NCBI GenBank assembly: GCA_965637545.1
Contig: OZ281495.1
Coordinates: forward strand, 29,512,001-29,576,000
Origin: Phallusia mammillata
Lineage: Eukaryota
DNA length: 64,000 nucleotides
Direction: 5' to 3'
Position 1 is the stretch's first letter. Each line of letters begins with the position of its first letter. Below the pieces are notes generated by a model that worked only from the letters and a program-made list of their open reading frames with translations, searched no databases and had not been told where the DNA came from. The translations under genes were made by a program, and so were the position numbers. Positions 1-36,100 of the stretch are shown piece after piece.

Positions 1-1327
1 AAACTTCCCTATAAATTCGTTTACCTCTGTCCCGTTAAGCATTTTGGCTCTTTGAATGTCTTCTTCGTCCAGTATAGTTTCAACATCGTGTTTTCTGATG
101 GACTGCATCACTCTTTTAACCAGTATTTGGGGAATGTTTCCATGGTGCACCAAAGAAAGCATACATATTGCCTGCCAGTGACATTTATCTTGCTCATTTT
201 GGCTTTCTTGGTCGTTCTGACTATTTTGTTCAGGGTTTAATTGACTTAAAATTGTTTGATATAGAAGCTTCTTTTGTCCAGATTTAGTTTTCTCATGTTG
301 CAGAAACATATAAGGGTCTATTTCCAAAAAGCTCAAAGGCTTTTTTGCCATTTTAACTGCACACAATCCCAATGGAAATCCACTTAACTTTTTTACGATT
401 TGTTTGGCAGCAGTTCGGTCGTTCTCTGTCCAAGTTTCATTAACTCCAAGAAAGTGAAGTCCTTCTTTGACTGTAAACCCTTCAATCTTTTCTGTGTGAA
501 AAGCACCAGATTTTGTTTGGGTGCAGGTAGCCTTGTTGTTCGATGTGATGTAGACGTGAATCATGTTTTCACGGTCACTGATATCGCCAATGCTCCTCAA
601 AAAATCTTCTAAGAATTTATCATCAGATGGATCTTCTATGATGATAAGAATTGGACAATTGCTCGAAGCCAAGACATCTACAAACTCCTGGCAATTTCCT
701 TGCTTCATACTAGTTGTTGCAGACTTGATTAACCCATCAGAACTATTCAACAGATTAGATGCCACCATCAGATCAATAAGCTTAGCTAACTGCTTCTTAA
801 TGTCGTGCATCTTGTCGCTACACTCAATATGCCATTTGACGAATAACTTTTCCTGGTTGTAAGGAAAATTTTCTCCAAGCTTTAGCACGATCTCGGACTT
901 TCCTGAACCTGCCATCCCGTAAAGGTGCAGCACTGAGACCCTCTTGTCCTGCTGAAGTTTTTTCACTTTTAAATAAACCTCAGTCTCCACAAAATGGGCT
1001 GTGGCTCGGGCGACATTTTTAATCGAGGTCGGTTTGATCTCTTCTCCTGTTAAAAAAATAAATAATTTGTGATCGCCTGTACACGATAATACAAAATTTC
1101 CCAAATATCTCAGACGGTTTAATGGCACATTTAAGTGTTGTGTAGTTATTGGTTGTCCGACTGGTTTGAATGTTTGTTGTATATTTGCTATAAATGAAAA
1201 TTATGTTTTTTTACCAACAAGAACTCTTACCTGTCTTATTGCTGCTTAACCAAGTATGCTCTCCTCCTAGCACCAAATTACCAACAGATTCAGTAATGTT
1301 ACAGCCGAAATTTTGTCTGGAATCCAT
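1..1327 (-). CDS. NLR-like NB-ARC-TPR protein, copy A (5' part; runs off the window start)
   Basis: Exon 1 1327-1231 encodes MDSRQNFGCNITESVGNLVLGGEHTWLSSNKT with donor G|GTAAGA. Exon 2 starts at 1046 (ttttaacag|GA) and I translated it open to base 1: Walker A GMAGSGKS, Walker B ILIIIEDP, YITSNN, GFPLGL. It is absent from the ORF track because it has no stop inside the window. Confidence 0.9.
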
Positions 1328-3289
1328 TTAAACCATCTTTTGTTAAAACAAAAACCACTTAGGATCTGTTGACACGCCACATATATCGTTCATTGCTTTA
1401 GCAGTCTGAGTTAATTTTAACAATATTGGCAGTCAGATTTGGTGCATTATTTCCTTGACACTGTTCAAACTATTGTTAGCAGCCTTGTGTACTCACTGGT
1501 TTCAACAAAATAAAGTTTGCAAATGAAAAGAGGAACTTCCTTGCAAATCTACACCTCTTATCCTAAGACACTGAAAAAATCTACACTTCTTATGTACAAT
1601 AACACTGAAATACTGTACATATAGTTCAATGGCAAGAACTCTACTCAAAATATTCAAGAACGTAACAAGAACAGAGACTTTGAACGTTTCTCTTTCTCCT
1701 GTAACTATATTTAACTAAGCAGAGTCAAAGAGTCGTAAAACAACGTGTTAGGTAATGCGATCCGAATTGTTAATAAGTGGCAAAGAGTAAACAAAACCTA
1801 CAGGTGCGTTGTTTTGTATGTTAGTGTGTAAGTACAATGAGAGTTGTTCTTGTTTAACTGTTGAAATTAGAAAGTCACAAACATGCTCATTGTGCATTGT
1901 GGCGACATAATGTGCATTTTTGCATATGTTTTGAAAGAAAGCATACAGGATGTGCTCTGCAGAAGCTAATCCACACTTTGACAAGCTGTGTGCAGCACAG
2001 TTTTAAACTACAAACTTACAAACACTCCTGAGTTAAACACGTTTTAATTTATTTAGTAACCGAAAGAAAAACAAATGGGGTCGCATGCAAAAAGCAAAAC
2101 CATTGAAGAACGCTTTTCAAGAATTTGAAACGGCTCTTTAAAAAAGTATGTCCGGCAAGTACAGAAACAATGATATATTTTTGCATTTCCTGCACGGAAT
2201 AAATGCCAACAAATAGTCAATTTAAGTACCCTGGAAACATACAAACAAAACAGAACATATCTACACTCTACTGTGGATTTTTACATGTAACCTATACCCA
2301 TCTTCTATTATTCTGCTTACCTTAATCATTATGATGTAAGGCAGGTGTTGTAATTCTCTCTCTATTCCATGGTTCTTGGAGCTTTTCGCCCCTTTAGGCC
2401 AATTAATCTGATCTGAAATACAATAAAGTGAGTTAATTTTGACTATTTTGTTCAGAACATAGTTGACTTGTTTGCACGTTTTTTAATGATTTAGTTTAGG
2501 TACGAATTCCACTTAATGGTTTCTTTAAATGTCAATCAAACAGTTTGACATTAACCATCACATGATTCTGTTAGTGTTCCAGCTGGTGTTTTTAAATCAA
2601 TCCAAAGCCTACGCGGAGAAAACACGTGTTAGAGAAAGCCAAATACACGTTGGAGGTGGTTTTATTTGGCCTTATTAAATCCAGCACTTTAATTGAATAA
2701 AGAAATCAGTTAACTTTAGTTCAACCGGAATATTCATTTACCCAATGCCGGATACATACAGTTTGAATGCATTATGCAAAAACTGAATTTGCAATTAAAC
2801 GGAGCGATTGACCACAATTATAAGAATAATGTCGTTGCTGGAAGGGTGCAAGAGAAGTGAATCAGTAAGGTTAGGGAATATTAAACACTTTCCGCTGACA
2901 CAGGTGGGGTGCAAGTACGGGCTAAATATTTCGTAGGGGAGTTTCAGGAAAGTAAAAAGTCAATAATCATTGTTTTACTATTTCAAACGTATAAACATGT
3001 TGCCACAAAAAAAATACGTGACACCAAGTATTGATAACAATTCAAAAAACATCCGTTATATTAAAATAAAGTAGTTTCCTAACGTCAACTTCTACCAAGT
3101 GCAAAAGCAGTTTTGGCATTTGAGACAAGATCAAATCTAGACAAGCACGTCATAGTGAAGAATACCGTAGGCTTTATGTAACTAATTGACTCAAGCCATG
3201 CACAATTCTTAAGGTGTCAACGAGTAAGTCAAAACAAAACATTTGCTGTCTAGACGGCAGACTTGGACAACTAGATTTTTTTTCGGTTT

Positions 3290-5248: not shown

Positions 5249-8152
5249 TTACCGAGAGTTTGACCTAATCATTTGATTCAAAGCTTCAAGAGATCTTTCA
5301 AGATGATTTTGAAGATCGTTTGAGATATACTCTTGCATTTTCAAAGCTTGTTCACAAAGTGCTTTGCTTTTTGCAGCACGATCCTCTATGTCACCATACA
5401 CCACTGCCCTTGCGTGGTTGTAACATGCCCACGGAAACGCCATTGCAGCCTCGGCCGTACTAAGAATGCCCTCGCATTGCAAAGCCTCATCGAAATGCTT
5501 TACGGCTTTGGCGTAATCGCCTCTGGACGCCCAGTATTTGCCGCAGTACACAATGCATCTGATAGAGATTTTCCATTCCTTCCATTGCATAGCTTTGTCA
5601 TACAAATCCTGGCACTGTCGGTCTGCTTCTGCGCCATCAAAGTTCTCGTTTAGGCCCAGAGCAATTAGCTTTATGTTGATTCGAGTGATCTGACGTTGGT
5701 GCCTCAAGTAGTCAAATTCTTGGGTGCTGATTTGTTTGCAGATACCGTGCTCATAAAAATGTGTTTCTTTAATTCTGTCTTCCATGTTATTTTCGTGGAT
5801 AAACCTTTTGATTTCCAAAACGGTGTTTTGCTTCTGGCTGCCCTGAAAAAGTTTTAGTGCTGTCAACTTCACTCGTACAGACCCGCGAGCAGATAGAACT
5901 AAGAAGAGTGGAGCTACTTCAAATCGTGTGTAAACTTCCTCTGAAATCGCCACCGCCAAAGTCGCGTAGTCTTTGCATTTTTGTCCAATAGCTTGAGTGA
6001 TATTTCCTCGATAACTTTTGATTAAAAGACTCATCGTGTGCAAGACAGATGCAATTCGCTCAGCAATCAAAGATTTAAACAACTTTTCTTTTTTCATGAA
6101 AAGGTGAACATCCATTTCTCTGAACTCTCGTAGCTTTGCAGGGTTAAGAGGCTGACTGGCCTCTAAAACTGTTTTGAGATAATTTTTAACCTCCCTGTTT
6201 GATTTTTGCCCATAGAAATCAACTTCTTTTGTCCTCGGTTGCAAAACAATGGAGATATATCTTTCAATATCAAAATCGGTCGACATAAGTATTCTTCCGG
6301 CTTCTGCACAATGATCAACAATCAGTTTTGCCTTCGTTTGTGTTCCATCTCTCAGGAAAGTTGCCACAGGACTGTAGAAAATGTCTTCACCCTTTAGTTC
6401 TTCAAGAATGGTTAACCATATTTGCACAGATGACTCGAGATGCTTCTCTGCTTCGATTACGTGGCTGGATTGCTTGCCAAGGGCTGATCCAAGAACTTCA
6501 TGCAGATGGGCACAGCAGAATTGAATCAGTCGAGTATTTTCACCATGGTAGGATAAAACCGATGGATCTTCTTCTTTGCACTCCCTTACATTGTCGAGTA
6601 TTGCTTGCAAATGAGGTATCATGTCAATTATGAATTCATGGTTTTTGGTAAGCCTTAAATCCTTGTGCACGATGGCTGCTATGCAAGTGACCATAGATCT
6701 CTTTGTAGTTTGTAGAAGCTCTTTTTGCTGGTGTAAGTGCCATTTCACAGCTCCAAAAACAACAGCGTGAAACGTAATTATTTCCTTATTTCGGTCTGTA
6801 GTTTCCTTTTTGCAAAAACCGTAGTCGCTGAGTTTCTCGATGAAATCATTTGCCTCTGTTTCGTTAAGAATTTGAGCTTTTTGGATGTCCTTCTCGTCCA
6901 GGATAGTTTCCACATTCTGTTTCCTGATCGACTGCATCACTCTTTCTACCAACATCTTTGGAATGTTTCCATGGTGCACCAAAGAAAGCATGCAGATTGC
7001 CTGCCAATGACATTTATCTTGATCAGTTTGGCTTTCTAATTCATTTATATTCTTGTGCTCAGGATTTAGTCGATAAAGAATTGTTAAATAGAGAAGTTTC
7101 TTGTTCCCCAGTTTCTTTTTTTCTCGTTCCAGCAGCATGTGAGGATCTGTTTCTAAGTACTCGTTGTACTGTGTGTAGGTCAATGGTTTTCTTGCCACTT
7201 TTACTGCACACAATCCCAATGGAAATCCACTAATCTTTTCAATAATTTGTTTGGCAGCACTTCGTTCTTTTTCCTCCAAAGTTTCATCCACCCCAAGAAA
7301 GTTAAGACCTTCTTGGACCGTAAACCCTTCAATTTTTTCGGTGTGAAAAACACCAGATTCTGTTTCGATGCAGGTAGCCTTGTTGTTCGATGTGACGTAG
7401 ACGTGAATCTTGTTTTCATTTCCACTGATACTGCCAATGCTTTTCAGAAAATCATGTAACAAATCCTTATCATATGGATTCTCGATAATGATCAGAATTG
7501 GACAATTGCTCAAAGCTAAAACATCTGCATATTCTTGGCAGTTTCCCTGCTTCATGCTGTAAGTAGCAGATCCAATCGACGCATTAGGATGATGCAAGAA
7601 GCCCTTTGCTGCCATCGATTCCATAAGCTTTGTAAGCTGTTCCTTAATATCGTGCTTCTTGCCGCTACACTGAATGTGCCATTTGACAAACAGAGTTTCG
7701 TCGCTGTAAGGAAATTTTTCTCCAAGCTTTAGCACGATTTCGGACTTTCCTGAACCTCCCATGCCCTCAAGTTGCAGGACAGCGACCGACTTGTTTTGCT
7801 GAAGATTTTGTAATTTTAGATAAACCTCAGTTTCCACGAAATGGGCTGTGGCTCGGGCGACATTTTTAATCGAAGTCGGTTGGATGTTTATTCCTGTTTA
7901 AAAAAAAAACACTGTCACAACTAATCCATTATTACTACTATTTCGATTTTGTTTTTGGCCCAGCAAAATGTTGTCACGTTATAATTAACTTAGGTGCTTT
8001 TGGTATATTTTGTAACAAAAAAAAATTAAATTGCTTCAACAACGGATAATCTTACCTGTCATGTCGCTGCTAGCTTCACTGTTTGAAACAATCGCCACAT
8101 TGCCAACTGATCCAGTAATGTTAAAGTTTGTAACATTTGCAGCGGAATCCAT
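5249..8152 (-). CDS. NLR-like NB-ARC-TPR protein, copy B (913 aa; most divergent paralog)
   Basis: Exon 1 8152-8056 (MDSAANVTNFNITGSVGNVAIVSNSEASSDMT, donor G|GTAAGA) joins exon 2 7893-5249 (ttttaaacag|GA) in phase 1. Motifs: Walker A GMGGSGKS, Walker B LIIIENP, sensor-1-like YVTSN, GxP motif GFPLGL, MHD-like TFHAVV, and C-terminal TPR-like YCGKYWASRGDYAKAVKHFDEAL and ACYNHARAV. Confidence 0.9.
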
Positions 8153-10129: not shown

Positions 10130-11465
10130 ACACACACATTTCTTTGATCTGCGAAAGGATGAATCGGTGACAATCTTGAAAGCGGACAAAGGAAATTGCA
10201 CAGTGGTTATGGATAGGAAGCAATATGAACACAAGGCACAAGCACTTTTGGACGACAGCTCGGTATACCTACGATTGACAAAAAATCCACTCAAGGGCAT
10301 AGAAAGAGAATTAAACAAGTTCATTTGGAAACTACGCACGGAAAACTGTCTAACCGACCAAGAATACCGACACCTCAGAAGCACTGACGGACTGCTTCCA
10401 AAGTTTTACGGTTTGCCAAAGATTCATAAGGATAATATCCCTTTGCGACCCATTGTTTCTTTCGTAAACTCACCCACGTATAATTTATCAAAGTTTCTCG
10501 CCGCCATAATCTCGCCTATCGTGGGTCGTTCCGGTTACACAATTAAAAACTCTTTGGGCTTTTTAGACACTATTTCGAATTTTAATATAAAACCAAGCGA
10601 ATGCCAAGTTTCGTTTGATGTTGTCAGTTTGTTTACGTCCATACCTACCGATTTGGCACTCTCGATCACTCTGGACAAACTCAAACACGACACTACGCTA
10701 CACGAACGCACCGGGCTAGATCTTTCTCACATACAGACGGCTTTACAGATTTGCCTTAACGCAACAGTTTTTACTTACAGAGACACAATATACAAACAAA
10801 TCTTTGGTACACCCATGGGCTCTCCTATTTCAGCAATTCTTGCTAATCTCACTATGGAACACATAGAGCAGAAGGCACTTGCAACATTCCACACACCACC
10901 ACGTCTATGGCTTCGATACGTTGATGACACATACGTCATTATCGACAGAAACATGGTCCACACATTTCACACACACCCGAACACCATATCACCTACAATA
11001 GCTTTCACCATGGAAACCGAACAACACGATACCATTGCGTTTTTAGATGTGGCTGTTACCAGGCAGCCAGATCAAAAGCTCAGCACTGGCATATACAAGA
11101 AGCCCACGAACACTGACCGCTACCTACACTATACTTCTCACCATCCACGGCACCAAAAACTTACAGTCGCCAAAACGCTTTACAACAGAGCCACAACTCA
11201 CATCAAGGATACGGTTCTTCACAAACACGAATGAAAAAATATTGCACGCGTGTTAAAGAATAACGGTTTCCCGCAAAACTTACACTACTTGACCCATAAA
11301 ACAACCACCTCACAAAACAGACAGTTCAAATCATTCACATGCTTACCGTATGTCCAGGGTGTGTCGGAGCGCCTAAAACGAATCCTGAATGATGCTGGGG
11401 TAAAAGTGGCAATGAAACCTTTCAAAACTATTGGGCAATTACTACCAAAACCAAAAGATGCCACT
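10130..11465 (+). mobile_element. Truncated Penelope-like retroelement (PLE) reverse transcriptase fragment
   Basis: ORF 10167-11234 has PLE-type RT motifs: ILKADKGN, PKFYGLPKIHK, PLRPIVS, VSFDVVSLFT, GTPMGSPIS, WLRYVDD, FLDV, YKKPTNTDRYL, SHHP. After a frameshift near 11234 the thumb/linker continues (LPYVQGVSERLKRIL...PKPKD) and stops before the GIY-YIG endonuclease. Confidence 0.9.
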
Positions 11466-12689: not shown

Positions 12690-13119
12690 GGATACTTTAT
12701 TCCACCTACTAACAACTCGGATCGCATTACCTAACTTGTTGTTTTACGACTCTTTGACTCTGCTTTGTTAAATATAGTTACAGGAGAAACTTTCATCTGT
12801 ATGTGCTTGATATGCCATTGAGTCGAGTTCCTGCCATTAAACTAGAGTTTTTCAGTATTGTTTTACTCTTAGTATAAGAGGGATAGAAGATAAGAATAAG
12901 AGGTTGCAAGGTAGTTCCTCTTTTCATTTGTAGACTTTGTTGAAACAAGTGCGTACACAAGGCTGCCCGCAGTAGTTTATACAGGGTCAACAAACACAGC
13001 CAAAATAAATGCTGACTGCAACTGTTGTTGGAATTTACGTAAACTGCTAAAACAATAAACGATTTGTGTCGCTTGTCAACAGGTCCTAAGTGGTTGTTGC
13101 TGTTAGTAACATGATTTAA
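12690..13119 (+). promoter_or_regulatory. Conserved upstream/5'UTR region of NLR copy C (paralogous to 1328-2030 and 24380-24998)
   Basis: Conserved aacaactcggatcgcattacctaac...gttttacgactctttgactctgct block. A CAG splice acceptor 37-39 nt before the ATG is conserved in all four paralogs (13082, 24959, 1366, 8192). Confidence 0.65.
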
Positions 13120-15999
13120 ATGGATTCCAGACAAAACTTCACTTTTAACATTGCTGGACCGGTTGGCAATTTGGTGACCGGAGGAGAGCATACTTGGTCA
13201 AGCAGCAGTAAGACCGGTAAGTGATTTTTTGCTGATAAAAAATGCAACTTTCATTTATAACAAATATACATCAAACATTCAGTCCAGTCGTACAATCAAT
13301 GACCACACGAGACTCAAATTTGCCATTAAAGAGTTTCAGATTTGTTGTATGTATTATCGTTTACAGGCGATCACAAATGATTTATTTTTCTAACAGGAAA
13401 CGAAATCAAACTAACCTCGATTAAAAATGTCGCTCGAGCCACAGCTCATTTCGTGGAGACTGAGGTTTATGTGAAAGTGAAAAAACGTCAGCAGGACAAG
13501 AGGGTCTCAGTGCTGCACCTTTACGGGATGGCAGGTTCAGGAAAGTCCGAGATCGTGCTAAAGCTTGGAGAAAATTTTCCTTACAACCGGGAAAAGTTAT
13601 TCGTCAAATGGCATATTGAGTGTAGCGACAAGATGCACGACATTAAGAAGCAGTTAGCTAAGCTTATTGATTTGATGGTGGCATCTAACTTGTTGAATAG
13701 TTCTGATGGGTTAATCAAGTCTGCAACAACGAGTATGAAGCAAGGAAACTGCCAAGAGTTTGTAGATGTTTTGGCTTCGATCAATTGTCCTATTCTTATC
13801 ATCATTGAAGATCCATCTGATGATAAATTCTTAGAAGATTTTCTGAGGAGCATCGATGATATAAGTGGCAGTGAAAACATGATTCACGTCTACATTACAT
13901 CGAAAAACAAGGCTACCTGCATCCAAACAAAATCTGGTGCTTTCCACACTGAAAAGATTGAAGGGTTTACAGTGAACGAAGGACTTCACTTTCTTGGAGT
14001 TGATGAAACTTGGACAGAGAACGACCGAAGTGCTGCCAAACAAATTGTAGAAAAATTAAGTGGATTTCCATTGGGATTGTGTGCAGTTAAAATGGCAAAA
14101 AAGCCACTGAGCTTTTTAAAAATAGATCCTTATATGCTGCTGCAACAAGAGAAAACTAAATCCGGACAAAAGAAGCTTCTATATCAAACAATTTTAAGTC
14201 AACTAAACCCTGAACAAAATAATCAGAACGACAAAGAAGGACAAAATGAGCAAGATAAATGTCACTGGCAGGCAATATGCATGCTTTCTTTGGTGCACCA
14301 TGGAAACATCCCAAAGATCCTGGTTGAAAGAGTGATGCAGTCCATCAGAAAACAGGATGTGGAAACTATACTGGACGAAGAAGATATTCAAAAAGCCAAA
14401 ATGATCAACGAGACAGAAGCAAACGAATTCATAGGGAAGTTTAGTGACTGTGGATTTTGCAAGGAGGAAAATACAAATCAAAATGAGAAAAGAGTAACGT
14501 TTCACGCTGTTGTTTTCGGAGCAGTAAAATGGCACTTACACCAGCAAAAAGAGCTTCTCCAAACTACAACGAGATCTATGGTCACTTGTATAGCTGCCAT
14601 CGTACACAAGGATTTAAGGCTTACCAAAAACCACAAATTCATGATTGATATGATACCTCATTTGAAAGCACTACTCGATACTGAAGCAGTGTCCAAAAAA
14701 GGAGGTATACATATCGTTCAATTTTGCTATGCCCATCTCCATGAAGTTTTGGGATCAGCTCTTGGAAAACAAACCAGTCAAGCAATCGAAGCAGAGAAGC
14801 ATCTTGAGCTTTCCTTGCGCACTTGGTTCAAAATTATGAAAAGATTGAAGGGAGATGATATCCTTTACAATCCTGTGACAACTTTCCTAAGAGATGGAAT
14901 ACAAGAGAAGGCGAAATTGATTGTTGAACATTGCGCAGAAGCTGGAAGGATACTGATGTCTACCGATTTTGATATTGAAAGATACATCTCCATTGTTTTG
15001 CAACCTAGAGCAGATGAAGTTGGTTTTTATGGGCAGAAATCGAACGAGGAGGTCAAAAGCTACCTCAAAGCAATTTTAGAGGCCATTCAGCCTCTTAATC
15101 CTGCCAAGCTCAGAAAGTTTAGGGATCTGAATGTTCCGCTTTTCATGGAAAAGACAAAGTTGTTTGAAACTTTGATCGCTGAGCGCATTGCATCTGTCTT
15201 GCACACCATGAGTCTACTGATCAAAAGTTATCGTGGAAATATCACTCCAACTATTGGTCAAAAATCAAAAGACTACGCGACTTTGGCGGTGGCGATTTCA
15301 GAGGAAGTTTACACACGGTTCAAAGTAGCTCCACTTTTCTTAGTTCTATCTGCTCGTGGCTCTGTACGAGTGAAGTTAACGGCACTAAAACTGATTCCGA
15401 GCAGCCAGAAACGAGAGGTGGTTTTGGAAATAAAAAGGTTTATCGAGGAAAATCAGATGGAAGACAGAATCCAGCAAATGTCTTTCTATGAGCATGGAAT
15501 TTGCAAACAAATCAGCACCCAAGAGTTTGACTACTTGAGGCATCAACGTGAGTTGACCCGTATCAACACAAAACTGATTGCTCTTGGCCCAAACGAGGAC
15601 TTCAATCTCGCAGAAGCAGACCGACAGTGCCGGTCTTTGTACGAGAAAGCTATTCGTCGAAAGCAGTGGAAAATCTCCATCAGATGCATCGTGTACTGCG
15701 GCAAGTACTGGGCCTCTCGGGGTGAGTTTGCCAAAGCTGCAGAGCACTTCGAAGTGGCATTGGAATGCAAGGGTATCCATAGTACAGCTGAGGCTGCAAT
15801 GGCGTTTCCGTGGGCGTGTTACAACCACGCAAGGGCAGTACTGTGTCACAAAATAACGGATCGTGCAACAAAAAGCAAAGCTCTTTGCGAACAAGCTTTG
15901 AAAATGCAAGAGTATATTTCAAACGATCTTCAAAAACATCTTGAAGATTCGCTTGAGGACTTAAATCAAATGATTAGTCCAACCAAACCCACTGTTTGA
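13120..15999 (+). CDS. NLR-like NB-ARC-TPR protein, copy C (899 aa)
   Basis: Exon 1 13120-13216 (MDSRQNFTFNIAGPVGNLVTGGEHTWSSSSKT, donor G|GTAAGT) joins exon 2 13397-15999 (ttttctaacag|GA) in phase 1. Same NB-ARC motifs (GMAGSGKS, LIIIEDP, YITSK, GFPLGL, TFHAVV) and TPR-like C-terminus. Confidence 0.9.
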
Positions 16000-23966: not shown

Positions 23967-24998
23967 GTGTACAGCGCAGAAAATTGTAACGCCCAGAGGT
24001 GGGCGCTACTCTCCAGGTTGGCGAGTCCTGTCCTTAGCTGTTTTGATAGATTCTACGTTTTATTACGCAATGAGCTTTTATGCTCTCGTAGGGGCGTAAA
24101 CATAGATTTTCTAAACCCGAGGTAGGCTAACCACAAACCTAATTCAAATAACTATTTCAACTTCAGATGAAAAGAGTTTGGGAACTACTGACCGACGCAC
24201 ACCTATAGCTTCACCCTTTGCTTATCGGAAGCTTGGTCTATAGTCGGTCTTCCCCAACAGGGCAACATTCGTATCTAAAAAAGATTGAAAAGTGTTAATT
24301 CAGGAGTGTTTGTGAATGCGGTCCGCGACGACATTTTACATGGAAAAGTTTGTAGTTTAAATCTGTGCTGCACACAGCTTACGAAAATGTGGATTACGCT
24401 TTACCGTATCCTACCCTTTCAAGCGTATGTAAAAATACACAATACATCGCTACAATACACAATGAGCATGTTTGTGACATTCCAAATTCAACAATTAAGC
24501 AACAACAACTTCCAACGTACATACACACGGCGATACAATAAGGCGTCACCTGCTAGGTCGTGGAATGCTTTTGTGTACCCTTTGCCACTTATCAACAACT
24601 CGGATCGCATTACCTAACCCGTTGCTTTACGACTCTTTCACTCTTGATCTGTTAGATATAGTTCCATGGAGAAAGGGAAACTTTTTGTGTTTCTGTCTCT
24701 GTTATGCCATTGAGTAGAGTTCTTGCAACTTAACTACAGTTTTTTTAGTATTAATGCATTGTAAGTAAGAGGTGTAGCTTTGTAAGGTAGTTTCTTTTCA
24801 TTTGCAAACTTTACTTTGTTAAAACCAGTGATTACACAAAGCTGCTCGCAATTGTTTATGCAAGATCAAAGCAAATAAATGCCAAAACGGTTTTGCCACT
24901 ATGGTTGAAATTAACATAGACTGCTAAAGAATTAAAAGATATATGTGGCTTGTCAACAGATCCTAAATAGTTCTTCATAGTAACGAAAGATGATTTAA

Positions 24999-27918
24999 AT
25001 GGATTCAAAACAAAATTTCGGCTGTAACATTGCTGAATCTGTTGGCAATTTGGTGCTGGGTGGAGAGCATACTTGGTCAAGCAGCAGTAGGACAGGTAAG
25101 AGTTCTTCTGTTGGTAAAAAATACAATTAGCATTTATAGCAAAGACACAATAAACATTCAAGACCGTCGGACAGTTACTAAGAAAAAAACACTTGATAAT
25201 GCCATCAAACAGGCTCCAATATGTGATAATCTTTATCTAAAATCTTTTTTATAGTTACCAGGATCACAAATGATTTATTTTTTTAAAGGAGAAGAAATCA
25301 AACCGACCTCGATTAAAAATGTCGCTCGAGCCACAGCCCATTTCGTGGAAACTGAGGTTTATTTAAAAGTGAAAAAACTTCAGCAGGAAAAGCGCGTCTC
25401 AGTGCTGCACCTATACGGGATGGCAGGTTCAGGAAAGTCCGAGATCGTGCTAAAGCTTGGAGAAAATTTTCCCTATAGCCAGGAAAAGTTATTCGTCAAA
25501 TGGCATATTGAGTGTAGCGACAAGATGCACGACATTAAGAAGCAGTTAGCTAAGCTCATTGATCTGATGGTGGCATCTAACTTATTGAATAGTTCTGATG
25601 GGTCAATCAAGTCTGCAACAACTTGTATAAAGCAAGGGAACTGCGAAGGGTTTGCAGACATTTTAGCTTCGTGCATTTGCCCGATTCTTATCATCATTGA
25701 AGATCCATCTGATGATAAATTCTTGGAAGATTTTCTGAGGAGCATCGATGATATAAGTGGCAGTGAAAACAAGATTCACGTCTACATTACATCGAAAAAC
25801 AAGGCTACCTGCATCCAAACAAAATCTGGCGCTTTCTACATTGAAAAGATTGAAGGGTTTACAGTCAAAGAAGGACTTCGCTTTCTTGGAATCGATGAAA
25901 CTTGGACAGAGAAAGACCGAAGTGCTGCCAAACAAATTGTAAAAAAATTAAGTGGATTTCCATTGGGATTGTGTGCAGTCAAAATGGCAAAAAAGCCACT
26001 GAGCTTTTTGGAAATAGATCCTTATGCGCTGCTGCAAAAAGAGAAAACTATATCTGGACAAAAGAAGCTTCTGTATCAAACAATTCTAAGCCAACTAGAT
26101 CCTCATCACAATAATGGAAATGACCAAGAAAGCCAAAATGAGCAAGATAAATGTCACTGGCAGGCAATATGTATGCTTGCTTTGGTGCACCATGGAAACA
26201 TTCCCAAGATCTTGGTTGAAAGAGTTATGCAGTCCATCCGAAAACAGAATGATGAAACTATACTGGACGAAGCAGACATTCAAAAAGCCAAAATACTCAA
26301 CGAGACAGAAGCAAACGAATTCATAGGGAAGTTTAGTGACTGTGGATTTTGCAAAGAGGAAATTACAGTTCAAAATGAAAAAAGAGTAACGTTTCACGCT
26401 GTTGTTTTCGGAGCAGTAAAATGGCACTTACACCAGCAAAAAGAGCTTCTCCAAACTACAACGAGATCTATGGTCACTTGTATAGCTGCCATCGTACACA
26501 AGGATTTAAGGCTTACCAAAGACCACGAATTTATGATAGACATGATACCTCATTTGCAAGCGCTACTCGATGGTGAATTAGAGTGCAAAAATGACCCATC
26601 CACGTTAACCTGCCAAGAAGGTCATACACAACTAATTCAGTTTTGCTACGCACATCTGCATGAAGTTTTGGGGTCAACGTTTGGCGAACAAATGAGTCAA
26701 CCAGTCTTGGCTGAAAAGCATCTTGAGTTTTCAATGCGCACATGGTTTATTATCCTAAAAAGATTGAAGGGAGAAGACATTTTTTACAATCCCGTGACAA
26801 CATTCTTAAGAGATGGAATACAAGAGAAGGCAAAAGTGATTGTTGATCACTGTGCAGAAGCCGGAAGAATACTGATGTCAACCGATTTCGATATTGAAAG
26901 ATACATCTCCATTGTTTTGCAACCGAGAGCAGATGAAGTTGATTTCTATGGGCAGAAATCGAACGAAGAGGTCAAAAATTATCTCAAAGCAGTTTCAGAG
27001 GCCATTCAGCCTCTTAATCCTGCCAAGCTCAGAAAGTTTAGGGATATGAATGTTCCGCTTTTCATGGAAAAAACAAAGTTGTTTAAAACTTTGATTGTTG
27101 AGCGAATTGCATCCGTCCTGCACACCATGAGTCTTCTGATCAAAAGTTATCGAGGAAACATCACTCAAGCTATTGGACAAAAATCAAAAGACTACGCGAC
27201 ACTGGCTGTTGCTATTTCAGAGGAAGTTTGCACACGATTTAGAGTCGCTCCGCCATTTTTACTTTTATCTGCTCGTGGCTCAGTACGAGCGAAATTAACG
27301 GCACTAAAACGGATTCAGAGCAGTCAGCAGCGAAACGTAGTTTTAGAAATAAAAAGGTTTATAGAGAAAAACCACATGGAAGACCGAATCCAGCAAATGT
27401 CTTTCTATGAACACGGTATTTGCAAACAAATCAGCACCCAAGAGTTTGACAATTTGAGGCATCAACGCGAGTTGACCCGGATTAACACAAAGCTGATAGC
27501 TCTTGGCCCAAGCGAGGACTTCAATGTCGAAGAAGCAGACCGCCAGTGCCAGTCATTGTACGAGAAAGCTATTCGTCGAAAGCAATGGAAAATCTCTATC
27601 AGATGCATCGTGTATTGCGGCAAGTACTGGGCCTGTCGGGGCGACTTTGTCAAAGCTGTTGAGCACTTCGATGAGGCATTGGAATGCAAGGGTATCCATA
27701 GTACAGCTGAGGCTGCAATGGCGTTTCCGTGGGCTTGTTACAACCACGCAAGGGCAGTACTGAGTCACAAAATAACGTATCGTGCAACAAAAAGCAAAGC
27801 TCTTTGTGAGCAAGCTTTGAAAATGCAAGAGTATATTTCAAACGATCTTCAAAAACATCTTGAAAATTCTCTTGAGGATTTAAATCGTATGATTAGTCCA
27901 ACCAAACCCAGCGTTTAA
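24999..27918 (+). CDS. NLR-like NB-ARC-TPR protein, copy D (908 aa)
   Basis: Exon 1 24999-25095 (MDSKQNFGCNIAESVGNLVLGGEHTWSSSSRT, donor G|GTAAGA) joins exon 2 25289-27918 (tttttttaaag|GA) in phase 1. Same motifs as copies A-C. Confidence 0.9.
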
Positions 27919-33197: not shown

Positions 33198-36100
33198 ATG
33201 AAATTCTATCATAGCTTCGTCGCGTTTCTGATTCTTGTATTACAAGTGCAAGCCGGAAAACTAAAGCACGAATCGACTCTGGACTGTGATCCGAACATAG
33301 GCGGATGCGAAAGTAATACTCACACCGATTCAAACGCAGAAGCGCCACAACCGATCCCAGCCCCGGTGGAACTGAAGCAGGAAACGGGTCGAAGTGAATT
33401 TGACATTGTGACTTCTAAACGTACCAGATCGACGCCGGCAAGACGACGTGAAAATCGACAACGTGAACGACATAACGCACCTACAATGTCGGTAGCAAGG
33501 CCTCAAGGAACAGCTGTTTCTGAAACCCGTGCTTTGACGGCAGAAATCGAAAGGCTAGAGACAGCGAGGGGTGGTTTACCACTTCCGAGGTCTGCGAAGG
33601 GCAAAAAATCGAAACGAAACAGAAGACGCAAGAAACAACGTCGCGGAGAACGTGTTTTCAGGCCAACGAACGCGAGTTACGAAGCTGAGGACGCGGTAAG
33701 CACGAGTGGACCTTACTGTCCTGAATGTTCACACATAGATTGTCGCGCCGACTTGAACAATTGCAAAGGCGGTTTGACGTTCGGTTTCTGCAACTGCTGC
33801 AAGCAATGTGCGAAAGTGGCGGGCGAGGAGTGCGGAGGAGTCCATGATCATTTCGGGAAGTGCGACAGGGGTCTAGAATGCAGCGTGTCACTGCGGAAAG
33901 CATCGGACGTGAGGGTTCTGACTACACGGAACACGCCGGAAGATATGAAGGGAATTTGCACCCGAGGTGAGAAAAAACAACAACAGTTTAAGCCGCACTT
34001 ATAAGAACATCAAAACATGTCAATTTCAAGAGGCACCAAAGCCCCCAAAGCGACCGTGATGGAGTGGGTGAAATATTCGCAGAATTATAGCAATTCTAAA
34101 TCACATAAGGCTAAGAGCTGGGTCAAAACAAGAGTATAATATTGATATAGATTTTTGTTAAATTAGTCCTCACCTGCATTAGGTCATGCAAAAACTAATA
34201 TTATTTGATTTGGGTACAACTGCTAAGCCACGCTGGAAGACAAATGTACACAATTGGCCTCGTTGAGTTTATAAATAGTAATAGTAAAGTCATCAGACGA
34301 TGTTAAAATGGTTCTAAGATGCTTTCATAAAAAAATCACTTTGATCACTTCCATATTGTTTTTCCAAAAAAAAGAAAACAGTATCTTTAGCCGTTCAGGG
34401 TTGTATTTTTGTGGCGGCAAGTGTCCCGAGAACCCGGGGCCTCCCAAATCCGCTCTTATACCATACTGGTAAAGTTGTTTCTTTTATAGTAATGGTTACT
34501 TCAAAATAGGTGAATTTTTACAATGTGAAATTGACAAAAACAATTAGCGTTCTTTTCTGGAAAAAGTTTGCAAAAATCGAATTTCCTTCAAATTCAGATT
34601 CCCTTTCCAATCACTCTTTTGATTTAGCTTATTTGCCTTTCAAATGCTCAACTAGACCGAAAAGGGGAAGTAACAAAGACCACGGGGCCGCTTCGCAACT
34701 CAAGTAGATAAGTTTCGGTCAAATCATCAAACCCGAACCGCGGCCAATCTCCTTAGCAGACCTCGCGTTTAATAATTCAACACCGATGACCCAATTGGTG
34801 CAGCGTTAGTAGAGGCACGTACACTTTCAACCGGGAGGGTGACGTCACGAGTGATGACGCCGCACACTGTGACGTAGTATGCTTTGTTTACTTAAAACAA
34901 AACTGGTATAACTGATGTACATTAAATACATTTCAATGCAAACCTACGTTTTTAATCAAGGACCTTTTCAATTGTTTAGTAATTATTATCACATATTTGG
35001 ATGGGGTACCATAAATGTTACGGTATTGTAAGATTTGGTTTTAATTTGTTAAAAAACAAGGTTTAAAAATGCACGCTAATTAAAGGTCTACGAAATTCTG
35101 TGGCAATGTTCAATGAATTAAAAAATAATTTCATCGGGGGCAATGCCACTAAAGTTATAAACATAAAGGCAGTGGGTGCGATTGATCTCAACAAACAAAG
35201 AATCTATCGCTTAATCATTGCAATAAACCAGGCGCTTTCAATTTGTGGCGTTTTCGGGTTACTTAATATCGATCGGGCTGTCAATGTTTCGCTCTTAGCG
35301 CAATAAATCGAATAAGCGACTCTTCCGCCTCTCAATGCTCGATTAAAAGTTGAGGGCTTCATTGTTTTGAATAAAGTTTACATAGTGACGCGAGAGCCGA
35401 CCACGGTCGATGTCCTTTTGTCTAAACGTTCGACATCGAAACAATAGCGGTCGATAAGGCTTATTGTGCTAAAGAGCTGTTGATCTAAATTGAAGAGGGT
35501 CAATAAAATGAGAATCGGCTTGTTAAGAGTACCAGGGTATGATATGGAATGACAAGTATCCAACAGACCCCTGAAGGGGACCACGGTGGCGTCAGTGCTG
35601 GCCACGTTTCATCACCACAGTGATTATAAATCGCTTATGGTCGCTGTGTTAGACAAACCAAGCATATAATGGTGTTTTTCAGTTGTTGATCAAAATGGGC
35701 GTCTCCGGAAATGTTCCCTAGAGTTCTAAATCGGGGCGGGCTTTTTTGTTTGGGTTCGGGCCTGATAAAGGCTTGGGTTTAAATAAAACGGTGTTGATTT
35801 AGGCCTGACCTCACACTAAGCCTCATGTGTGCCACAATTTTACCAACTATAGGGCGTAATTCGGGCTTAGTTTTTTTTAAATACATTTTCGTCTTGGGCC
35901 GGGTTTTGGACTCTTTAGGGTTCGGGGCGGTGCGGGGCTCGCACGTTGGGTTCGGGCCTGGGTTCCCTTTGCAATTTCGGGCCCCGTGCTTACAACTCTA
36001 GTTCCCTATGTTGTGCGCTTTCACAACTCCGCACTACCACAGCATGCTCCTTCAATGTTTCTTACAGTGGTCTGATCACATCCACGGTAACTTTGCCTAT

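Follow-up and report, generated by a model that had tools for sequence, protein, structure and literature searches.

Short beta-prone N-terminal motifs on separate exons of NB-ARC/TPR-like receptors in Phallusia mammillata and other tunicates

Four receptor genes and their exon layout

The 64 kb stretch of the Phallusia mammillata genome analysed here (contig OZ281495.1, positions 29,512,001 to 29,576,000; hereafter the window), which is 38.6% G+C and free of N, carries four paralogous NLR-like genes, A to D. Their predicted proteins begin with a short beta-prone peptide encoded by an exon of its own, followed by an NB-ARC-type nucleotide-binding oligomerisation domain (NOD) and a TPR-like helical half. 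An earlier note on this DNA had singled out the peptide as the sole N-terminal module of these proteins and had read it as a RHIM-like, fungal-style amyloid signalling motif. The observation is confirmed, the amyloid interpretation is partly supported and the mechanism is unproven. Exactly four copies were found in the window with tblastn, A and B on the minus strand and C and D on the plus strand; they are recently duplicated members of one STAND family, with the following features.

Copy C, TAA abutting the ATG: 13117-13119, plus strand
Copy C, exon 1: 13120-13216, plus strand; 97 nt, phase 1; encodes MDSRQNFTFNIAGPVGNLVTGGEHTWSSSSKT plus the first base of a Gly codon; donor CCG/GTAAGT (slash, exon-intron boundary)
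Copy C, intron: 13217-13396, plus strand; 180 nt; acceptor tttttctaacag
Copy C, exon 2: 13397-15999, plus strand; predicted NB-ARC-type NOD, winged-helix and all-alpha TPR-like solenoid; stop codon 15997-15999
Copy D, exon 1: 24999-25095, plus strand; encodes MDSKQNFGCNIAESVGNLVLGGEHTWSSSSRT
Copy D, exon 2: 25289-27918, plus strand; homologous acceptor at 25289; NB-ARC E 4.2e-5
Copy B, exon 1: 8056-8152, minus strand; divergent motif class; encodes MDSAANVTNFNITGSVGNVAIVSNSEASSDMT
Copy B, exon 2: 5249-7893, minus strand; NB-ARC E 2.3e-6; marginal TPR_2
Copy A, exon 1: 1231-1327, minus strand; encodes MDSRQNFGCNITESVGNLVLGGEHTWLSSNKT
Copy A, exon 2: 1-1046, minus strand; truncated by the window start; NB-ARC E 2e-7

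Every copy thus combines a 97-nt first coding exon, located as the earlier note had placed it, with one long exon joined to it in phase 1, a Gly codon being split by the intron. The joined frames stay open for 899 aa in C, 913 aa in B and 908 aa in D, and that of A exits the window at its start. Donors are strong in all copies (CAG/GTAAG or CCG/GTAAG), and the introns, 160-195 nt long, end in a long pyrimidine tract and AG. The usable acceptor of copy C is the one at 13397, because an AG further upstream brings in an in-frame stop. A ttTAA sits immediately 5' of the ATG in 4/4 copies, and the corollary drawn earlier, that no larger domain could be added upstream, holds for these predicted gene models. 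The four peptides also read as they had been quoted, the listing order then being A, C, D, B.

Several details of the exon borders deserve mention. In copy D, in-frame acceptors occur at both 25262 and 25289, a spacing of 27 nt, and use of the upstream one would add 9 residues (917 aa in total); the counterpart of this upstream AG in copy C, checked directly, leads to a stop. In A, C and D the TAA ends a two-codon upstream open reading frame (ORF) of the form ATG-ATT/GTT-TAA that abuts the main ATG (C 13111-13122 and D 24990-25001, plus strand; A 1325-1336, minus strand) and could affect translation initiation; copy B has no such upstream ATG within the 30 nt read. A pyrimidine-rich stretch ending in AG lies 9-20 nt 5' of each ATG (13090-13106 in C), for example ttgttgctgttag and tgtttgtcacaacag, and by its sequence looks like an acceptor for a 5' untranslated exon or for spliced-leader trans-splicing, a process common in tunicates.

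The long exon and its relatives

Pfam places the long exon among NB-ARC domains, with A (31.0 bits) and B (27.5 bits) passing the cut-off of 23.5 bits and D (23.4 bits) just under it; the sole match of copy C is to nSTAND6 (E 7.7e-4). Homologs match NB-ARC more clearly, with a best E of 1.8e-11 and scores of 44.2 and 36.4 bits for P0002 and P0022. Copy C carries the expected motifs in order, namely Walker A (GMAGSGKS), Walker B (LIIIEDP), a GLPL-like GFPLGL and an MHD-like TFHAVVF, and all four blocks are retained in the family consensus. An AlphaFold2 model of the copy C exon-2 protein reached a mean pLDDT (predicted local distance difference test) of 84 and a pTM (predicted template modelling score) of 0.84. 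Foldseek compared it with PDB structures and returned the STAND-TPR protein 6mfv_A (1.9e-9), Apaf-1 3sfz (5.2e-9), CED-4 (1.1e-7) and tomato NRC2 (6.8e-7), with SAMD9, MalT and Avs3 also among the top matches, at 10-16% identity to the solved structures.

The C-terminal half is modelled as an all-alpha stack of paired helices, closest in structure to the TPR-containing STAND protein 6mfv. Matches to Pfam TPR profiles are marginal, occur in copy B alone and fall below cut-off (TPR_2 E 0.021, TPR_1 E 0.072), and "TPR-like" is therefore the safe wording. Of the architecture proposed earlier, the NB-ARC assignment is upheld by Pfam, AlphaFold2 and Foldseek alike, and the TPR assignment survives as an all-alpha TPR-like solenoid. 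Fold prediction and ordered motifs together indicate that the long exon encodes a genuine NB-ARC-type STAND NTPase with an all-helical TPR-like half.

A word-indexed protein search with copy C returned no relatives and so missed this family. An exhaustive HMMER search recovered 89 cluster representatives, 34 of them with E <1e-30, at 21-32% identity to the window proteins. The relatives that carry a species name are without exception tunicate (Ciona intestinalis, Phallusia mammillata, Clavelina lepadiformis and Styela clava), and the remainder come from ENA, JGI or Logan contigs. No paper describing this STAND family was found in the literature, and the tunicate family, with its distinct motif and cassette-exon organisation, appears undescribed.

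The exon-1 motif and its slot

Sequence comparison suggests a motif of roughly 20 residues around the core N-[IV]-x-x-S-x-V-G-N-[LV]-[VT]-[ILV]-G; this motif abounds in N, G, V, I, S and T but has almost no K, R or P. In the window it reads GNLVLGG, GNLVTGG or GNVAIVS. Across 15 non-redundant motif segments, those of homologs being chosen by eye, compared with the bodies of the same proteins, N is enriched 2.7x, G 2.5x, V 1.9x and T, I and S about 1.6x each, Q only 1.2x, and K (0.07x), P (0.37x), L (0.43x), as well as R and D, are depleted. NLR-associated amyloid signalling motifs are about 25 aa long, enriched in N, G, V, I and Q and depleted in K, P and L, a compositional bias that beta-helices share (Dyrka et al. 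2020). The composition and length of the exon-1 motif match those typical of NLR-associated amyloid signalling motifs.

The ratio of nonsynonymous to synonymous substitution rates (dN/dS) among A, C and D is 0.29-0.38 in exon 1, on small counts, and 0.15-0.29 over the first 347 codons of exon 2; exon 1 is therefore coding and constrained, though more loosely than the NOD. Nucleotide identity among the same three copies is 84-91% in exon 1 versus 90-93% in exon 2. Copy B, at 65% and 79% identity to the others in exons 1 and 2, represents a second motif class, yet retains the core N-I-T-x-S-V-G-N-[LV]. In a full-length AlphaFold2 model of a Clavelina homolog, residues 1-53 are coil without secondary structure (pLDDT 22-28, the alignment being shallow at the N-terminus) and the remainder is confident, so modelled, the tail is probably a flexible, disordered appendage undocked on the protein body. 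Other identities for the peptide were considered and set aside: a signal peptide or mitochondrial presequence, as both a hydrophobic core and basic residues are absent; N-glycosylation sequons, as NIT, NFT and NVT are present but in a cytosolic protein, and copy D is without any; and a membrane beta-hairpin, as the strands are too short.

The motif was judged in relatives wherever a eukaryotic gene model or genomic DNA was readable. In many of them a short N/G/V/I/S/T-rich peptide lies just before the NOD on its own small phase-1 exon with a split Gly codon, and the motif thus recurs in homologs from other tunicates. Clavelina P0022 (...VLNVSIEGSNVTIGDGIQG) carries it on an 87-nt symmetric 1-1 cassette exon (L003:10370-10456), which apparently uses a GC donor (CAAG/GCAAGT, L003:10456-10462). 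Further motif exons were read at three related loci, L002 (9587-9719, NVYNFYGSTQVAIDSNVAFGS), L006 (5701-5812, NEVEISNSSVQNLTIVNN) and L005 (9900-9984, SPNVNIVGSTIKKLVV). Ciona motifs include NIHNSNVGNLTV and NISGSTVGTVV, and the Ciona gene LOC104265769 has alternative first exons that yield either TSNTVVIEQCGQVNVLAG or SSIVVNTEVFNLSDSNISSIIVNQG. Styela LOC120345199 (GNVCLGLGN) has FHGNVCLGLGNQENQHE, very near the VGNLVLGGEHTW of the window.

Two further observations concern these exons in Ciona. An identical 30-aa motif first exon is annotated in two genes of the same chromosome, LOC104265769 (P0126) and LOC144744498 (P0134), being either shared by two downstream gene bodies or a very recent duplicate. 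The motif exon of LOC100185875, present in XP_002121784, was not found between the first and NOD exons in GCA_018327825.2 (L004:7690-9995), which could reflect a presence/absence polymorphism or a difference in assembly or annotation.

The N-terminal position is not reserved for this motif. In a distant Clavelina paralog the place of the motif is taken by a TIR domain (TIR_2, E 1.6e-19), whose four exons meet the NOD exon via a phase-1 intron at the corresponding point; motif exon and TIR therefore share one modular slot. The N-termini of two other distant members, P0035 and P0038, are weakly death-fold-like in a language-model Atlas search (scores 0.55-0.62), which makes them leads only. The motif accordingly occupies a slot taken by TIR in one paralog and perhaps by death-fold domains in others.

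As for the surroundings of these genes, two small stand-alone protein-kinase genes, of 310 and 340 aa, are found just downstream of the Clavelina TIR-NOD gene together with a fibrinogen-C gene (L007:18008-21385). A retroelement remnant is found inside the tandem array of the window, between copies B and C (ORF fragment 10167-11234, plus strand; RVT_1 E 1e-8), and an RVT_1 ORF likewise adjoins the homolog in L002. A 268-aa ORF at 33198-34004 (plus strand) with an IGFBP N-terminal domain (E 1.1e-6) is unrelated to the NLR array.

Signalling interpretation and known systems

It is tempting to view the tail as an amyloid-type signalling motif, in which NOD clustering nucleates a beta assembly that recruits a motif-bearing effector. 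Ligand binding by the TPR-like half would drive NOD oligomerisation and so gather several tails, which would then assemble into an ordered beta-sheet, amyloid-like nucleus. This nucleus would recruit or template a downstream protein with a matching motif, as do fungal HRAM, PP and sigma motifs, bacterial BASS motifs and animal RHIM or cRHIM, and each motif class (B versus A, C and D; the alternative first exons of Ciona) would confer its own signalling specificity. We tentatively assign this reading a probability of about 40%: it fits the position, length, composition and modularity of the motif. Of the fungal-style amyloid NLR system envisaged in the earlier note, the slot, the composition, the length and the recurrence in tunicate homologs stand, while a matching effector motif was not found.

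A number of observations weigh against the amyloid-signalling reading. At E<=10 the four window peptides hit nothing in Pfam, a library that covers RHIM, HET-s, PP/Ses_B and sigma, and neither did the eight homolog N-termini searched at the same threshold, although HMMER filters may hide very weak matches to such peptides. RHIM, PP and BASS3 have in common a G-phi-Q-phi-G core (I/V-Q-I/V-G) (Dyrka et al. 2020). This core is absent from the window motifs; some homologs alone come nearer to the tetrad, with MQIG in Phallusia and VTIG in Ciona and Clavelina. A motif profile run against PDB sequences matched no solved amyloid; its sole match, the ketosynthase chain-length factor 6qsp_B (E 0.24), was dismissed as chance. 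Look-alikes of the 32-aa peptide in the ESM-Atlas were limited to unnamed short clusters below evidence level. The RHIM likeness proposed earlier is thus not borne out, and by its sequence the motif would form a family of its own rather than a canonical RHIM. Exon 1, moreover, evolves faster than the NOD, some annotated Ciona and Styela isoforms lack the motif, and the choice of homolog segments by eye weakens the point drawn from composition.

The search for a partner points the same way. In the window, a motif hidden Markov model (HMM) matched the four exon 1s only and no second motif-bearing protein, in line with the earlier statement that no cognate effector was found there, and a broader core HMM run over 179 kb (the window plus six related loci, 115 kb) again found NLR exon 1s only. 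Region-limited database searches, which require exact 5-mers, are confined to length bands, are low in sensitivity and do not extend to the window's own genome, returned only P0134, the NLR paralog with the same first exon, for P0126:1-40, and the query itself alone for P0048:1-45. Scans of metagenome loci, using A1 or the L002 exon-1 ORF as query, were blank, and the receptor genes do not form pairs with neighbouring effector genes. The interest of the finding depends on finding such a partner.

These negative results would be expected if the tail were a non-amyloid linear or beta-strand motif that, after NOD oligomerisation, attaches to a folded partner, an adaptor or an enzyme, through beta-augmentation or as a docking peptide, a reading which keeps the induced-proximity logic and dispenses with a templated cross-beta polymer and prion-like propagation. 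A folded-domain partner would carry no copy of the motif, and the modelled disorder of the tail, the shortness of its conserved core, the absence of a RHIM core and the lack of any match to known amyloid-motif profiles agree with it. However, an N/G/V/I-rich, K/P/L-poor composition and a length of 20-25 aa suit beta-solenoid or amyloid motifs, unlike typical docking peptides, and divergent, cassette-swapped motif classes fit homotypic recognition better than one conserved binding domain; we regard docking as somewhat unlikely. Alternatively, the tail might be an intramolecular autoinhibitory pseudo-ligand that rests in the TPR-like groove or on the NOD and is freed on activation. Extended peptides are common ligands of TPR domains, and the coexistence of isoforms with and without the motif might suit a regulatory add-on; nevertheless, in the Clavelina model (with its shallow N-terminal alignment) the tail docks nowhere, and the presence of TIR at the same position in a paralog suggests that the slot serves for output and not as a plug, so that autoinhibition seems improbable.

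An equally poor prospect is that exon 1 has no specific function beyond providing a start codon and a spacer, the similarity between copies resulting from recent duplication. The lower conservation of exon 1 than of exon 2 and the homolog isoforms without it would be in keeping with this, but the dN/dS values are clearly below 1, the core N-I-x-x-S-V-G-N-[LV] is shared by both motif classes, and related motifs occur on like exons in distant homologs (21-32% identity); the reading is already disfavoured.

If the amyloid-signalling reading is true, an exon-modular motif in the effector slot would extend amyloid NLR signalling to the sister group of vertebrates and account for signalling by receptors that have no CARD, PYD or TIR. 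A bolder extension, which we consider doubtful, is that tunicates possess a lineage-specific amyloid network in which NB-ARC/TPR-like receptors bear interchangeable G-N-phi-x-phi-G cassette exons that template matching motifs on separate effectors. This would represent a complete fungal/bacterial-style, prion-like relay from NLR to effector in a chordate, with specificity provided by alternative first exons. The family offers a simple test system, with short motifs, several classes, natural motif-less isoforms and TIR-bearing paralogs. Should the motif not form amyloid, what is left is still an undescribed tunicate-specific expansion of NB-ARC/TPR-like receptors whose N-terminus comes, unusually, from a cassette exon.

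Amyloid signalling coupled to NLRs is an established mechanism in fungi and filamentous bacteria. For animals, to our knowledge, amyloid signalling is known for RHIM and cRHIM, and the NLR-like layout only as a sequence-based prediction in amphioxus. The window proteins resemble Apaf-1, CED-4 and the plant and prokaryotic NB-ARC STANDs (6mfv, NRC2, Avs3, MalT) in NOD fold and motifs and in their helical-repeat C-terminal sensor; unlike these, they lack CARD, CC and TIR, and their repeats are TPR-like, not WD40 or LRR. With metazoan RHIM and cRHIM proteins (RIPK1/3, ZBP1, TRIF; Drosophila PGRP-LC/LE and Imd) they share a short non-globular motif where death folds otherwise sit, although this motif is without the G-phi-Q-phi-G or (I/V)Q(I/V)G core and without a Pfam RHIM match.

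Amphioxus RHIMs likewise occur in positions usually held by death-fold domains, including the RHIM-NACHT-repeat protein BF82280, and RHIMs are apparently missing from tunicates (Kajava et al. 2014, PMC4262963). The window proteins repeat the BF82280 layout of motif, NOD and repeats, with a NOD of NB-ARC type and not NACHT. Because that protein has been described, a short amyloid-type motif at the N-terminus of an NLR-like protein in an animal has a precedent at the level of prediction; the novelty implied in the earlier note is reduced as regards layout and persists as regards the tunicate family, which appears undescribed.

The closest parallels are the fungal NWD2/HET-S HRAM, PP and sigma motifs and the bacterial BASS motifs on NB-ARC/TPR proteins (Dyrka et al. 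2020). Unlike those systems, the tunicate motif is without a known matching effector and without an adjacent effector gene, falls outside the described motif families and resides on a spliceable cassette exon in an animal host. Like them, the window proteins carry a beta-prone, N/G/V/I-rich motif of 20-25 aa at the extreme N-terminus of a NOD-repeat protein, where it replaces an effector domain, and "all-in-one" paralogs carry TIR in the same place.

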